Shown: positions 5,698 to 10,003 of the stretch, piece after piece | Layout: the number at the start of each line of letters is the position of its first letter | Position numbering within the stretch: the first letter of the stretch is position 1 | Origin: Zygophlyctis sp. KS116 | Taxonomy: Eukaryota; Fungi; Chytridiomycota | Length of the DNA: 32,000 nt | Reading direction: 5' to 3' | Assembly (NCBI GenBank): GCA_054661495.1 | Contig: BAAFSQ010000008.1 | Coordinates: 1-32,000 of the forward strand | Translations under genes and position numbers: made by a program | Notes under the pieces: model-generated | The model's database searches: none | The model's input: only the letters and a program-made list of their open reading frames with translations | What the model was told of the DNA's origin: nothing

Positions 5698-7121
5698 TTA
5701 GCTATCTGAACTATCTGAACTATCACTAAAGATCTCAAAAGAATCTTCTTGAGCCTGGAGCATATCAAAAAAATTTAAAACTGATGCATCTTCAGATAAG
5801 TCTCCTTGCGGCTGATCAACAGGGACGAGATTGCCCTTGATGCGCTCTTGTGTAGAGGATATTACAGTAGGATCACTAAAGGGGAACGGAGAGAATATCC
5901 TAACTAGTTTTTCTACTCCTGCAGTATATATCAATGGTAGATGTGGATGAAATAAAAGAGAGTTAACAATCGATCGATGAGATTTTAGAGTGAATAGTGG
6001 TTTGGGAACTACTTTTATAAAAACTAATATACCTGATTTACAAGGCGGAGATGATTCTCGATAACTTATTCCATGACTAGTATCAAAATTAGCTAGTGGA
6101 TCATCGATACTAGGAATTTTCCAGACATATCCACGGAAATCATCGCTTCCACAACCAAATAATGTACCAGAAGAATCAAAACATCCAGTTTTAAGAGTTG
6201 AAACACTTTTGTATCCATGATATCTAGTAGTAGGACTTGTTAAAAAACACATTGGATCTACATCATCCATGTTATATATTGTAGGATAAAATCCATTTAA
6301 AATAGCACCTATTTTGATTCCATTCGGACTCCAAACAGCAGAAGGAATATCAACAATTCTACCTTGAATTCGCCCTCTAAATAATGATGTAGTAAACGCT
6401 TTTAGAGGGTTACATTCTCGCCCAAAAGCCTTCCGATCATCAAACAATAATATTCCACCATTTTGATCACTTGTAACGAATAAATGCTCAAAAACTGGAT
6501 TAAATTGAACGCAATTCTGGGGTGTAGTCATTTGAATAGCTCCAGCATTTTCACTTAATCTTGAGTCCCATCTCTGAATCGACCCATCTAGAGAAGCTGT
6601 AAGTATTGTTGTATCACAGTGAGGATCTACTGAGAGTTTAGTAACTGCATTTTCGTGATGTAAGTTGATATCTCCAATGACTGAATTCCTAATCATTTTT
6701 CTCAATGCAACATCTGATTCTAAATCATACTGCACCAAATACCCATCATTTCCACAAGAATATAGCATTTGACAATGATAATCAAATTCTATAGAAAATA
6801 TATTAGACAGATGACCTCTAAAAGTTCTTTGGTGATCTAATGCAGTGATGGCCGGTCCAAACGATCTCTTAACCTTTTATTTACGCATTAAAAGAATACC
6901 AAAACTCTGCAATCATCCCCGCCAAATGCTAAAAATGTTCCTGCTCCTTTAGACAAACTGATTGCGTTCACACAACCAAAAGAGCCTCGAATCGCACGGG
7001 AAAAGCTAAACTTTGATCCATGATCCTTGATTGCCAGTTCTAATAGTCTATTGTTTGTATTACAAGATGAAGGCTGTATAGATCTCTTTTCCAGTTCATT
7101 TACTAACCTGTCGTTGTGCAT
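5698..7121 (-). CDS. DCAF5: DDB1-CUL4-associated WD40 protein, DCAF5/WDR22-like
   Basis: FGCVNAISLS..GGDDCRVL, GHLSNIFS, CGSDDFRGYVWKIP, LKSHRSIVNSLLFHPHLPLIYTAGVEKLVRIFSP, D..VLNFFD. One clear intron near 6874-6899 and a probable in-frame intron at 6012-6041. Confidence 0.8.
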
Positions 7122-7207
7122 AAACACCTACCCTCTCACTGTTACTAAAATCCAGACACGTACATAATTATGTAGTTTATTATAAATTAAACAATTGATC
7201 TTGAGAT

Positions 7208-7960
7208 CTATAATGCATTCAAGAATCTCATTGATTTTTGTACATTGACCTGAAGAGTCAACATCTTATTTTTAGTGAGATTCATATCCTGAGAAATAGT
7301 TGCAAATTGTAAGGATGCAGCAATAGCAATTAACATTTGATACGCACATATAGACACTTCATGTACTCTTTCATAAGTTATAGTTGAATCATGCATAATA
7401 ATATTTTGGACCAGTCCGACATGAATCATATCCAACACTTCAACATTTTCCCTTAAGTTTATATACCAAGATTTGAATTCATATTTGGACATGATTTTCT
7501 TAATTTCAGCCCATTTTTCTACAGGATCAGTAGCAGTTAAAGACCCTTGTTTTAGAATTACTAGACATTCACAGACTGTTAAAAGTTCATGTGGTACAAC
7601 TGTATACCAAGATGCTTCTTGAATATGAGTAATTGGTAATTGTTGAAGGAAACCTCTGAAATGATCTAATCTAGGCTTCTTATCATCCACCATCTCCTGA
7701 TAAACCTTTTGAACTGAAATAAATTCAGCATTCAGGAATTGCATTCTTAATTTTGTTCTAAATATTAGAATCTCCTGTGCAATTGCTCCTAAATGACCAT
7801 TGACTGATCTTAATTTCAACAAATCAGCATTCGGCAATTGATTAAAAATAATTAAAAGCAATTCATCAGGCAATCTATTTAATCTGGAAATGCTAGCTTT
7901 GACCAATGTAAGGGATCTGGGAAGAATAGGATCAGTTGAGAATTTATGTATAGCACACAT
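7208..7960 (-). CDS. F-box protein with C-terminal dynein stalk/microtubule-binding-domain-like region (intronless, 250 aa)
   Basis: F-box RLNRLPDELLLIIFNQLPNADLLKLRSVN. The downstream pattern P-L..L..L....I.E......P..L..V.E.L.IL.K ... W.EIKKIM....F ... ITYERVHEVS..A resembles the dynein heavy chain MTBD flanked by coiled coils. Confidence 0.75.
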   Translation of the reverse strand: MCAIHKFSTDPILPRSLTLVKASISRLNRLPDELLLIIFNQLPNADLLKLRSVNGHLGAIAQEILIFRTKLRMQFLNAEFISVQKVYQEMVDDKKPRLDHFRGFLQQLPITHIQEASWYTVVPHELLTVCECLVILKQGSLTATDPVEKWAEIKKIMSKYEFKSWYINLRENVEVLDMIHVGLVQNIIMHDSTITYERVHEVSICAYQMLIAIAASLQFATISQDMNLTKNKMLTLQVNVQKSMRFLNAL

Positions 7961-8176
7961 TTTTTTCTAATTTTAAATCTATTCTAGTCTAAATTAAGCT
8001 ATTAATGCATCAAGACTAAAAATAACACTACAAATGTCTAAAATAGACTAAAAGTAGCAAGAACACGTAAACTACATTAGAGTACTTGTCGTTTCATAAT
8101 CCAAAATTCAAATCTACTCATTGCAAATAATTATCTTGAACTTAATTTATTTCTTGAATTTCTAAACTTGTAAATA

Positions 8177-8614
8177 CTAAAATTTCAACATTCCAAGTGG
8201 AGTATCTTCATCCTCGTATTTTGATGACGTTGCATTCATCATCATATTTAATCGAAGTACTTTCTTCTTACTAGACTTTGTCTTTACATGTCTTGGTTTT
8301 TGCTCGATACCAAAGTAATTATCCATAGAGTTTAGAATCAATGTTTGATCTAATAATGAAGATCTATATCTGAGTTTTTGACAAGATAATTTATAAATGA
8401 GATTTGGATTATCAGGTTCTGGAATGACTGTAATTGCCTTGTAATGGCTATTCTCCTTTTGAAAGATCTTTTTAAGGAATTTAACGATTCTAGTTTGTTG
8501 AGAACCATCTAGTCCAATCACTGGTTCCCTTTTGTATGAATCTGATTCTGGTAAATGAGGCAAGATATGAAAATTAGCATGAACTATAGGAGAACCGGCC
8601 TGACCTTTTTTCAT
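8177..8614 (-). CDS. Small Zds_C-domain-like protein (Zds1-family PP2A-Cdc55 regulator motif)
   Basis: LIYKLSCQKLRYRSSLLDQTLILNSMDNYF matches the recalled Zds C-terminal consensus IYxLSxxKL...RxLxxQxLxxNxMxxY. C-terminal EDEDTPLGML. Intronless 145-aa ORF. Confidence 0.6.
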   Translation of the reverse strand: MKKGQAGSPIVHANFHILPHLPESDSYKREPVIGLDGSQQTRIVKFLKKIFQKENSHYKAITVIPEPDNPNLIYKLSCQKLRYRSSLLDQTLILNSMDNYFGIEQKPRHVKTKSSKKKVLRLNMMMNATSSKYEDEDTPLGMLKF

Positions 8615-8768
8615 TTTTTAGGAATCTATTTTTAGAGTATTCAAGATATAAACAGGTTTGAGATATTTTTAGATTTTTTGGTAAGGATCAGCGTTCTCAA
8701 AGCACATGCAAGCACGCACAAGCACTATAATTTTTTATGGGCAGGTGTAAATTCTAGAGCCTGCAGCC

Positions 8769-10003
8769 ATGGAGGGAGGGGGGCCATGGAACCAGCAAGG
8801 TGTCGGATAGGTCCAAGGGTAATTAGAAATGCCGAAAAGAGATGTTGATGATATGGACTATACTCAAGACTCAGAGGTTGACGAGAAGGGTGAAATGAAG
8901 GTTGATGAAGATGGGGAATTATTACAAGGTAAAAGAATTTATTCAAAGACAAAGGTCGGCAGTACAAGGTGGATGCTTTTAATCTTCCAAGACATCCATC
9001 AAGACTCTATATGCTGACTGTGGACGTTGCAAAAATTCTAGGATTTAAAGATACTCATGTTTTTCTATCAAAGAATCCGTCTTTTACTAAACTGGTGGCA
9101 ACAGATGAAGATAGAGAGGCTCTGGAAGAACAGGATTTAGTACCAAGTCAGCTTAAAAATAAGACAATTTCTATTCTTCCTGCTAGAAATGTTTTCAAAA
9201 AATTTGGACACAAGATTATTAAAAAGGGGAGACCGGTAAGAGATGATTATCTGGTGGGAGATAGAGAGGAAGTTGCTGAAATTTTGGAAAAAAAGATTTC
9301 TGATATTTCTCAATATGGGGATTTTGTGAGAGATTATGTCGAAATTTACAAGGATTTTCCTTATAGGACAAATGATACTCATAGGGCCGATCCTGGTCAT
9401 CTAGAGCCTTTAGATGGTCCAGATGGGCTAAAAAAAGATGAATGGATGTATAGATGTGTTTTATCTGCTGCAGAGTTTAATCGGACAATGGCCATAGGAA
9501 GACCCAAAAGATTTTGGGATCCTCATACAAATATTGAGCATGTACCAAGGTAAAAGTATATATTTTTACTCTAAAGATCAACTCAACCGGCTAGGGCGTT
9601 TGTTCAAACTAATATGGCCTATGATCAGTCAGCTCCAGGAAAAGTCAATGTAAATGTTCATATATCAAGAAAGGAAAATACTAACTGGAAAGAAGTTGAA
9701 TTAAACCAAGATTGTGAAAAATATCCAATTGCAGTGATTCCAGGTCAACGTCAGTATGCATTTTCAGTGTATTTTGTTTTATGTTGAATTTTAGATTTAG
9801 CAAACGATTTGGTGTTCATAAAAAGAAACAAATCCTCCCTCCGGCAGATATTCCTCCAGCACCTGTAGAAGAGTCAGCCTCTAATGGACGTGAGGCAGAT
9901 ATTATTAACCCGGATGCAATGGACGAGTCTTTTGATCTACCGGTGAGAATTTATATGCTAATTATTGTAGAGAAAGAGGGCAAAAGCATCTGAGCAATAT
10001 TAG
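8769..10003 (+). CDS. RSC7: Chromatin-remodelling complex subunit Rsc7/Swp82 (CRC_subunit domain)
   Basis: Spliced DEKGEMKVDEDGELLQGRQYKVDAF..YML..VAKILGFKD..FL.KNP..ARNVFKKFGHKII..G..VRDDY; SAAEFN..R..FWDPHTNIEHVP.STQP. Start is either 8769 (gccATGg, needs a 27-nt intron at 8800-8826) or 8829. Confidence 0.8.

Follow-up and report, generated by a model that had tools for sequence, protein, structure and literature searches.

What kind of protein is made when an F-box is joined to a piece of a molecular motor? This question is raised by a reading frame in the first 32,000 nucleotides of contig BAAFSQ010000008.1 of the chytrid Zygophlyctis sp. KS116 (GenBank assembly GCA_054661495.1), a stretch that we call the window. 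An initial annotation, made from the sequence only, had proposed that an intronless reading frame of 250 amino acids (aa) at positions 7208–7960 encodes a fusion of an F-box with a detached dynein stalk and microtubule-binding domain (MTBD). We find that residues ~75–250 of this protein are genuinely homologous to the stalk tip of dynein heavy chains, with the outgoing coiled-coil helix (CC1), a six-helix MTBD and the returning helix (CC2), and that this stalk tip is derived from an axonemal dynein of the inner-arm I1/f-alpha (DNAH10) class. The function is less directly accessible, and we argue below that the protein is probably a substrate receptor of a Skp1-cullin-F-box (SCF) ubiquitin ligase.

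The initial annotation gave the reading frame no strand. It lies on the minus strand, where the list of open reading frames contains an ATG-to-stop frame of 250 aa plus stop codon, and the plus-strand translation of 7208–7960 is riddled with stops. The open frame is 252 aa long, so that only two further codons lie upstream of the ATG, and the start Met-Cys is common to the nine closest relatives of the gene. For these reasons we consider the gene to be complete and single-exon, as had been claimed. Its orthologues in a 72%-identical relative (L024) and in Batrachochytrium salamandrivorans are likewise intronless. A freshwater metatranscriptome contains one contig of 170 nucleotides (nt) that lies on 7293–7462 with two mismatches, which is weak evidence, compatible with transcription of the gene. 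In window coordinates, the gene and its parts are the following.

7208–7960, minus strand: complete single-exon gene for the F-box/dynein-stalk-MTBD protein, 250 aa plus stop, delimited by the reading frame, the limit of the open frame and the start shared with relatives
7889–7960, minus strand: aa 1–24, N-terminal tail, predicted to be disordered (model confidence, pLDDT, below 50 for residues 1–24)
7760–7882, minus strand: aa 27–67, F-box of three short helices, the last of which continues into CC1
7646–7759, minus strand: aa 68–105, CC1, the outgoing stalk helix (helix 55–105 in the model), with P96 and H100/F101/F104
7352–7645, minus strand: aa 106–203, globular six-helix domain (H1–H6) homologous to the dynein MTBD
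7514–7552, minus strand: aa 137–149, H2–H3 loop, hypervariable in length within the family, from the length distribution
7211–7351, minus strand: aa 204–250, CC2, the helix returning to the C-terminus (helix 204–249 in the model), without the dynein CC2 proline

The F-box half is recognized by standard models. Pfam F-box-like (PF12937; cut-off 24.3 bits) matches aa 27–67 with an E-value of 6.6e-6 and 26.2 bits, and F-box (PF00646; cut-off 20.5 bits) covers aa 27–54 with 25.7 bits, in agreement with the location (about aa 26–66) given in the initial annotation. Such models also match 52 of the 70 family members described below. In the predicted structure, the F-box adopts the three-helix fold seen in Skp1-bound F-boxes, and it superposes on the Skp1-bound F-box of Fbw7 with a root-mean-square deviation of 1.2 Å. 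Skp1 genes are present in this genome (PF01466 matches on contigs C139 and C126).

The homology of the second half to dynein emerged more strongly with each enlargement of the profile. When the single sequence was searched against the Protein Data Bank (PDB), seven of the eight matches were dynein heavy-chain stalks, all in register, though these matches were marginal (best E 0.011). A profile of 10 relatives matched dynein stalks with an E-value of 2.4e-10, and a profile of 70 relatives matched human DNAH10 (4.9e-17), bovine DNAH10 (6e-17) and the Chlamydomonas I1-alpha heavy chain (8glv_Cn; 2e-16). With this last profile, the DNAH10/I1-alpha matches exceed those to every other dynein class by more than 20 bits, and cytoplasmic dynein reaches only 5e-5 to 5e-3. 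Aligning the family to the nine stalks from this genome's own dyneins with hhalign gave a probability of 98.7% and an E-value of 1.7e-16 over 159 columns. The dynein-like residue strings pointed out in the initial annotation, and their spacing over about 130 aa, are correct, and co-linearity with dynein stalks in fact extends over ~160–190 aa.

The predicted structure (pLDDT 86.7, predicted TM-score 0.72) leads to the same conclusion. It consists of a helix of 50 residues (55–105), six short helices (111–202) and a helix of 46 residues (204–249), which together form an antiparallel coiled coil with a six-helix globular tip. When this model was compared with the PDB using Foldseek, dynein stalks or MTBDs made up all of the top 50 matches, at probability 1.00 in every case, and the fold is nearest to MTBD structures determined in the microtubule-bound state. 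Nevertheless, the protein cannot be classed as a dynein heavy chain: its 250 aa contain neither an AAA domain nor any other Pfam domain of dyneins, and it lacks the ring, linker and tail by which these proteins of ~4000–4600 aa are defined.

To examine how widely this architecture occurs, we searched 1.84 billion representatives, clustered at the 50%-identity level, exhaustively with the single sequence, which yielded 87 clusters at E ≤ 1e-3, of which 69 also satisfy E ≤ 1e-10. The family combining F-box and stalk, for which the initial annotation had suggested looking in chytrids, exists there and in zoosporic fungi more widely. Names were looked up for 31 of the 87 clusters and for one sequence from a further search, and all 19 proteins with an organism name come from zoosporic (flagellated) fungi. 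These are, in the Chytridiomycota, B. salamandrivorans, Phlyctochytrium, Nowakowskiella (two proteins), Quaeritorhiza, Blyttiomyces, Chytriomyces, Caulochytrium, Lobulomyces, Clydaea, Irineochytrium and Fimicolochytrium, the last being the one additional named member from an alignment-based word-index search; in the Monoblepharidomycetes, Gonapodya; and in the Blastocladiomycota, Paraphysoderma, Sorochytrium and Blastocladiella. None of the 19 belongs to the heavily sequenced non-flagellated fungi. The same architecture is thus found across three fungal phyla or classes, and identity over the full length ranges from 96% down to ~27% in the 70 sequences.

Family members carry database labels such as ‘hypothetical protein’ or ‘F-box domain-containing protein’, and three entries show that gene models in the family can be unreliable. 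A protein of 327 aa from Irineochytrium annulatum (P0042) is labelled ‘Dynein heavy chain 10, axonemal’, which is a misnomer, as it is an F-box/MTBD protein. An entry of 708 aa from Nowakowskiella (P0052), in which a sugar transporter is joined to a C-terminal family fragment, probably represents two merged gene models. In an entry of 1462 aa from Gonapodya (P0080), 1185 residues with no Pfam match precede the F-box. Zygophlyctis itself has a second copy on contig C462 (12–515, plus strand; L002), which is cut by the contig start and is 47% identical to the window protein over aa 82–249; the F-box is present in its full-length orthologue (P0007). Both copies stem from a later duplication within this chytrid lineage.

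The closeness of the family to DNAH10 raises the issue of which dynein gene was its source. This genome, that of a flagellate, has at least 12 dynein heavy-chain stalk loci. When the family profile was compared with the genome's own dyneins, the gene on contig C67 scored 54 bits and the next best 18 bits, and this gene is the orthologue of DNAH10 / inner-arm I1(f)-alpha (E 3.6e-95, as opposed to 2e-45 for the next class). We then inferred maximum-likelihood trees from the family and nine of the stalks, leaving out those on C28 and C94, which are intron-split and unjoined, and a short match on C41. The family forms a single clade, apart from every dynein gene (support 100/100). The split that groups the family with C67, apart from the eight other dyneins, received an ultrafast-bootstrap value of 99 and an SH-aLRT value of 97 in a careful run, and SH-aLRT values of 98 in two quick runs. 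The stem branch of the family is long, at 2.0–2.4 substitutions per site. When the family tree is rooted with the dyneins, its first split separates Blastocladiomycota from Chytridiomycota members, which fits vertical descent from an early fungal ancestor.

Lack of introns had been offered as a sign of a retro- or exon-shuffling origin. However, this feature does not discriminate between origins: the parental-type stalk of C67 lies within an uninterrupted frame of 1201 aa and is therefore intronless too, so that a plain DNA-level partial copy would also have been intronless.

To see what selection has kept and changed since then, we compared 71 family rows with the nine dyneins column by column. 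Many hallmarks of the dynein stalk persist. The CC1 proline (P96) is present in 85% of the family and in all nine dyneins, the H3 tryptophan (W150) is present in 100% of both, and L98, L105, E115, F162, S203, V213, A215 and Y219 are also kept. The Pro-Pro before H2 is retained in the family, the window protein having the second proline only. The family also has patterns of its own. CC1 positions 100, 101 and 104, where dyneins have alanines, are occupied by His (93%), Tyr/Phe and Phe (94%). In CC2, Y207, L210, I211, A214 and Q218 are invariant in a family-specific manner, and each of these, like A215, is at least 90% conserved. Within the globular part, the polar residues with the highest conservation are basic, namely K154 (94%), K155 (92%), K163 (94%), R198 (90%) and R200 (86%; His in the window protein), and they sit on H3, H4 and H6. 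H3 and H6 are reported, in studies by Redwine in 2012 and Lacey in 2019, to be among the dynein helices that face the acidic tubulin surface.

Lengths are conserved as unevenly as residues. In 68 of the 70 members, the spacing between F-box residue R51 and P96 is exactly 44 residues, while the tail preceding the F-box measures 0–149 residues and the H2–H3 loop 7–110. The H2–H3 segment is the site of the microtubule-contacting ‘flap’ in DNAH7 and other axonemal dyneins (PMC6629372), and the loop could tune lattice or partner specificity between lineages.

Given these patterns, it is probable that the gene encodes an SCF substrate receptor whose docking module is a shortened, detached I1-alpha stalk tip, putatively acting on microtubules. 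The F-box would bind Skp1, recruiting Cul1, Rbx1 and an E2 enzyme. Its last helix is predicted to run unbroken into an antiparallel CC1/CC2 coiled coil of fixed length, about 7 nm (~46 residues at 1.5 Å each), which would present the six-helix, dynein-type MTBD at its far end, and the MTBD would dock on the acidic tubulin lattice via the conserved basic H3/H6 face. Binding would presumably be constitutive and not ATP-switched, because the coiled coil has no AAA ring that could slide it and because bulky aromatics replace the dynein alanines. The fixed stalk would then determine how far above the lattice the ligase sits, within reach of tubulin or lattice-bound proteins that it could ubiquitinate. 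That a detached stalk-tip module can work by itself is indicated by chimeras of the seryl-tRNA-synthetase coiled coil and the dynein stalk-MTBD, which bind microtubules (3ERR, 6RZB; PMC6629372).

The setting that we favour for such an activity is one in which zoosporic fungi turn over the microtubules of the flagellum or axoneme; an example is the breakdown, after encystment, of the retracted axoneme, on which the protein possibly docks. We favour it because the family is confined to flagellated fungi and its source is an axonemal, not a cytoplasmic, dynein, and because of two observations in other work. According to passages in PMC8887899 and PMC12659703 that quote Venard 2020, retraction of the axoneme in chytrids is followed by its degradation over ~2 h, in part at least via the proteasome, with centrioles spared; and alpha-tubulin, together with a dynein subunit, becomes ubiquitinated when Chlamydomonas resorbs its flagella (PMC2733750). 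A more specific version of this proposal is that, after encystment, the SCF ligase reads the lattice and marks tubulin or doublet-bound proteins of the internalised axoneme for removal by the proteasome, which we put forward as a tentative idea, possible but doubtful in this precise form.

Several observations weigh against the proposed function or limit its basis. The residue at H1 position 117 is basic (Lys/Arg) in all nine dyneins, but is Thr, Ser or Ala in the family, with 3% basic. The Lys-Lys pair at the N-terminus of H1 is not basic in the family either, although it is also absent from the DNAH10-like parent. The CC2 proline (position 228), found in all nine dyneins, is absent from the family, so that CC2 is one continuous helix. 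The basic H1 residue and this proline are features linked, in dyneins, to microtubule contact or to the mechanics of the stalk. The proposed fusion of an F-box to a detached MTBD stands by profile and by fold, but Pfam's own family for the dynein stalk (MT, PF12777) has no match to the window protein even at E ≤ 10, and detects just three of the 70 members (best E 3.3e-7). Binding to microtubules and to Skp1, as well as the substrate, are predictions from sequence, and the link from this gene to axoneme degradation draws only on the phyletic pattern and on plausibility. The 170-nt contig is the sole transcript evidence. The phyletic claim covers 31 of the 87 clusters by name and, since the search used a single sequence, distant members in eukaryotes other than fungi may have escaped it. 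Finally, predicting a complex of aa 90–240 with the genome's own alpha- and beta-tubulin, represented by their large, unjoined terminal exons, returned no answer (score 0.00), which is evidence neither way.

As a side observation, the main beta- and alpha-tubulin genes used here (contigs C121 = L014 and C699 = L015) each have one large terminal exon, of 433 and 428 codons, respectively. As these exons lack the first ~15–25 residues, each gene appears to have a tiny first exon followed by an early intron.

The loss of the basic H1 residue could further suggest that the dynein-type fold has been repurposed. In that case, the protein would be a conventional F-box receptor that delivers a protein other than tubulin to the SCF for ubiquitination, for example some unrelated substrate or a protein that normally contacts the I1-alpha MTBD. 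Such a change of target would also be compatible with the long stem branch and with those invariant residues (Trp, His, Glu and Gln) that are specific to the family. On the other hand, the structure most closely resembles MTBDs bound to microtubules, the best-conserved surface residues are precisely a basic set on H3/H6, as expected for a module that meets acidic tubulin, and the family is restricted to flagellated fungi. We therefore regard repurposing as unlikely, though it merits serious consideration beside the lattice-docking receptor.

Even if the module does dock on microtubules, the outcome need not be degradation. The protein might compete with or regulate I1-alpha at its docking sites on the doublets, or might form a Cullin-free Skp1 tether at microtubules or centrioles. 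Non-SCF complexes of Skp1 and F-box proteins are established, as exemplified by yeast Ctf13 and Rcy1, and the affinity of the family is specifically to the I1-alpha/DNAH10 stalk, not to that of cytoplasmic dynein. However, recruiting substrates to SCF is by far the commonest role of an F-box, an F-box would be dispensable for mere competition, and a rigid link of invariant length fits the positioning of a catalytic assembly better. Our evidence does not separate a competitor or tether from a ligase, and we consider a non-degradative role quite improbable.

A chance reading frame, a decaying dynein heavy-chain fragment or an assembly or annotation artefact, as the faulty gene models P0042, P0052 and P0080 might lead one to fear, is effectively excluded by the conservation data (70 full-length sequences down to ~27% identity with invariant residues and fixed spacing, and one architecture in three fungal phyla or classes within a monophyletic family apart from dyneins), to which the confident structure model and the RNA-library contig on the reading frame can be added.

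The surroundings of the gene offer little further guidance. Upstream of it, 7961–8176 is AT-rich and non-coding, and is followed by a separate reading frame of 145 aa (8177–8614, minus strand), for which no Pfam family match was found. This frame has a counterpart of 51% identity at the same position in relative L024 (1–291), and a metatranscriptome contig of 279 nt spans 8322–8600; this is probably a genuine gene of unknown function that evolves fast. Directly downstream, on the same strand as the F-box gene, is a WD40 beta-propeller gene (5698–7127, minus strand) with at least two exons (6888–7127 and 5698–6768) and a short intron between them. Its protein has a W-D-x-R motif, which we take to resemble that of CUL4 (DCAF) receptors. 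The order of upstream reading frame, F-box gene and WD40 gene is kept in L024, but not in B. salamandrivorans, and a comparison with these two relatives revealed no conserved functional neighbourhood. In B. salamandrivorans (L022/L023), the orthologue is at 8001–9134. In both assemblies it lies upstream of a gene for a multi-propeller WD40 protein of ~1200 aa (with IFT122-like propeller matches) and a DUF4515 gene, and in L022 a reading frame of a Ty3/gypsy-type retroelement (RVT_1, RNase H, integrase) lies upstream of it. With tblastn, the ~1200-aa WD40 gene has no match to the WD40 gene of the window.

Both modules of the protein are well known, and F-box proteins are known for swapping their target-binding domains. 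The combination appears to be new, as the initial annotation had supposed. In the full-text literature that we searched, we found no F-box protein with a dynein MTBD and no dynein-type MTBD outside heavy chains, and a recent atlas of fungal flagellar proteins mentions neither F-box nor ubiquitin. A feature search of the ESM Atlas returned only a generic F-box cluster, and a shape search returned dynein fragments and F-box clusters separately, with the combined architecture absent.

The family defines a class of F-box receptor not described before, with a ‘substrate domain’ that would recognise the surface of a polymer. If the proposed function is correct, it would also be the first lattice-docking E3 ligase built from the MTBD of a motor. 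It could then be the missing specificity factor for the degradation of the chytrid axoneme, and it is a testable candidate for how the retracted axoneme is selectively dismantled with centrioles spared (PMC12659703, PMC8887899). A natural stand-alone MTBD maintained by selection also shows that this module is evolutionarily portable, and provides a small protein for MTBD–lattice recognition without a motor. Restriction to flagellated fungi makes the family a potential marker gene of the flagellar programme, which terrestrial fungi have lost, and its occurrence in B. salamandrivorans places it in the genus of the amphibian pathogens.

These proposals can be placed beside three known systems. 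Canonical SCF receptors such as Skp2, Fbw7 and beta-TrCP share with the family an N-terminal F-box of ~40 residues that starts with Leu-Pro and has the three-helix fold, followed by a C-terminal target-binding module. However, the module in our family is not WD40, leucine-rich repeats or any other described F-box partner, but a dynein-type MTBD on a rigid coiled-coil hairpin. DNAH10 and the Chlamydomonas I1 1-alpha chain (8glv_Cn) have a homologous, co-linear CC1, six-helix MTBD and CC2 with the same fold, and have in common with the family the CC1 Pro, the Pro-Pro before H2, the H3 Trp, the H4 Phe, the H6 Ser and the CC2 Tyr. They differ in possessing an AAA+ ring, linker and tail, all three of which are missing from the F-box/MTBD protein, and in a stalk that is about twice as long as the ~45–50 residues per strand found here. 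Missing from the family are also the basic H1 residue that is universal in dyneins and their CC2 Pro; the CC1 Ala positions hold aromatics, and an F-box caps the open end of the hairpin, where dyneins have AAA4/AAA5. A third parallel is provided by the seryl-tRNA-synthetase/stalk-MTBD chimeras (3ERR, 3J1T, 6RZB), in which the base of the hairpin is held by seryl-tRNA-synthetase, whereas in the family it carries a ubiquitin-ligase handle. Those chimeras are laboratory constructs, whereas the F-box/MTBD proteins are a natural family that has been under selection since an early fungal ancestor.
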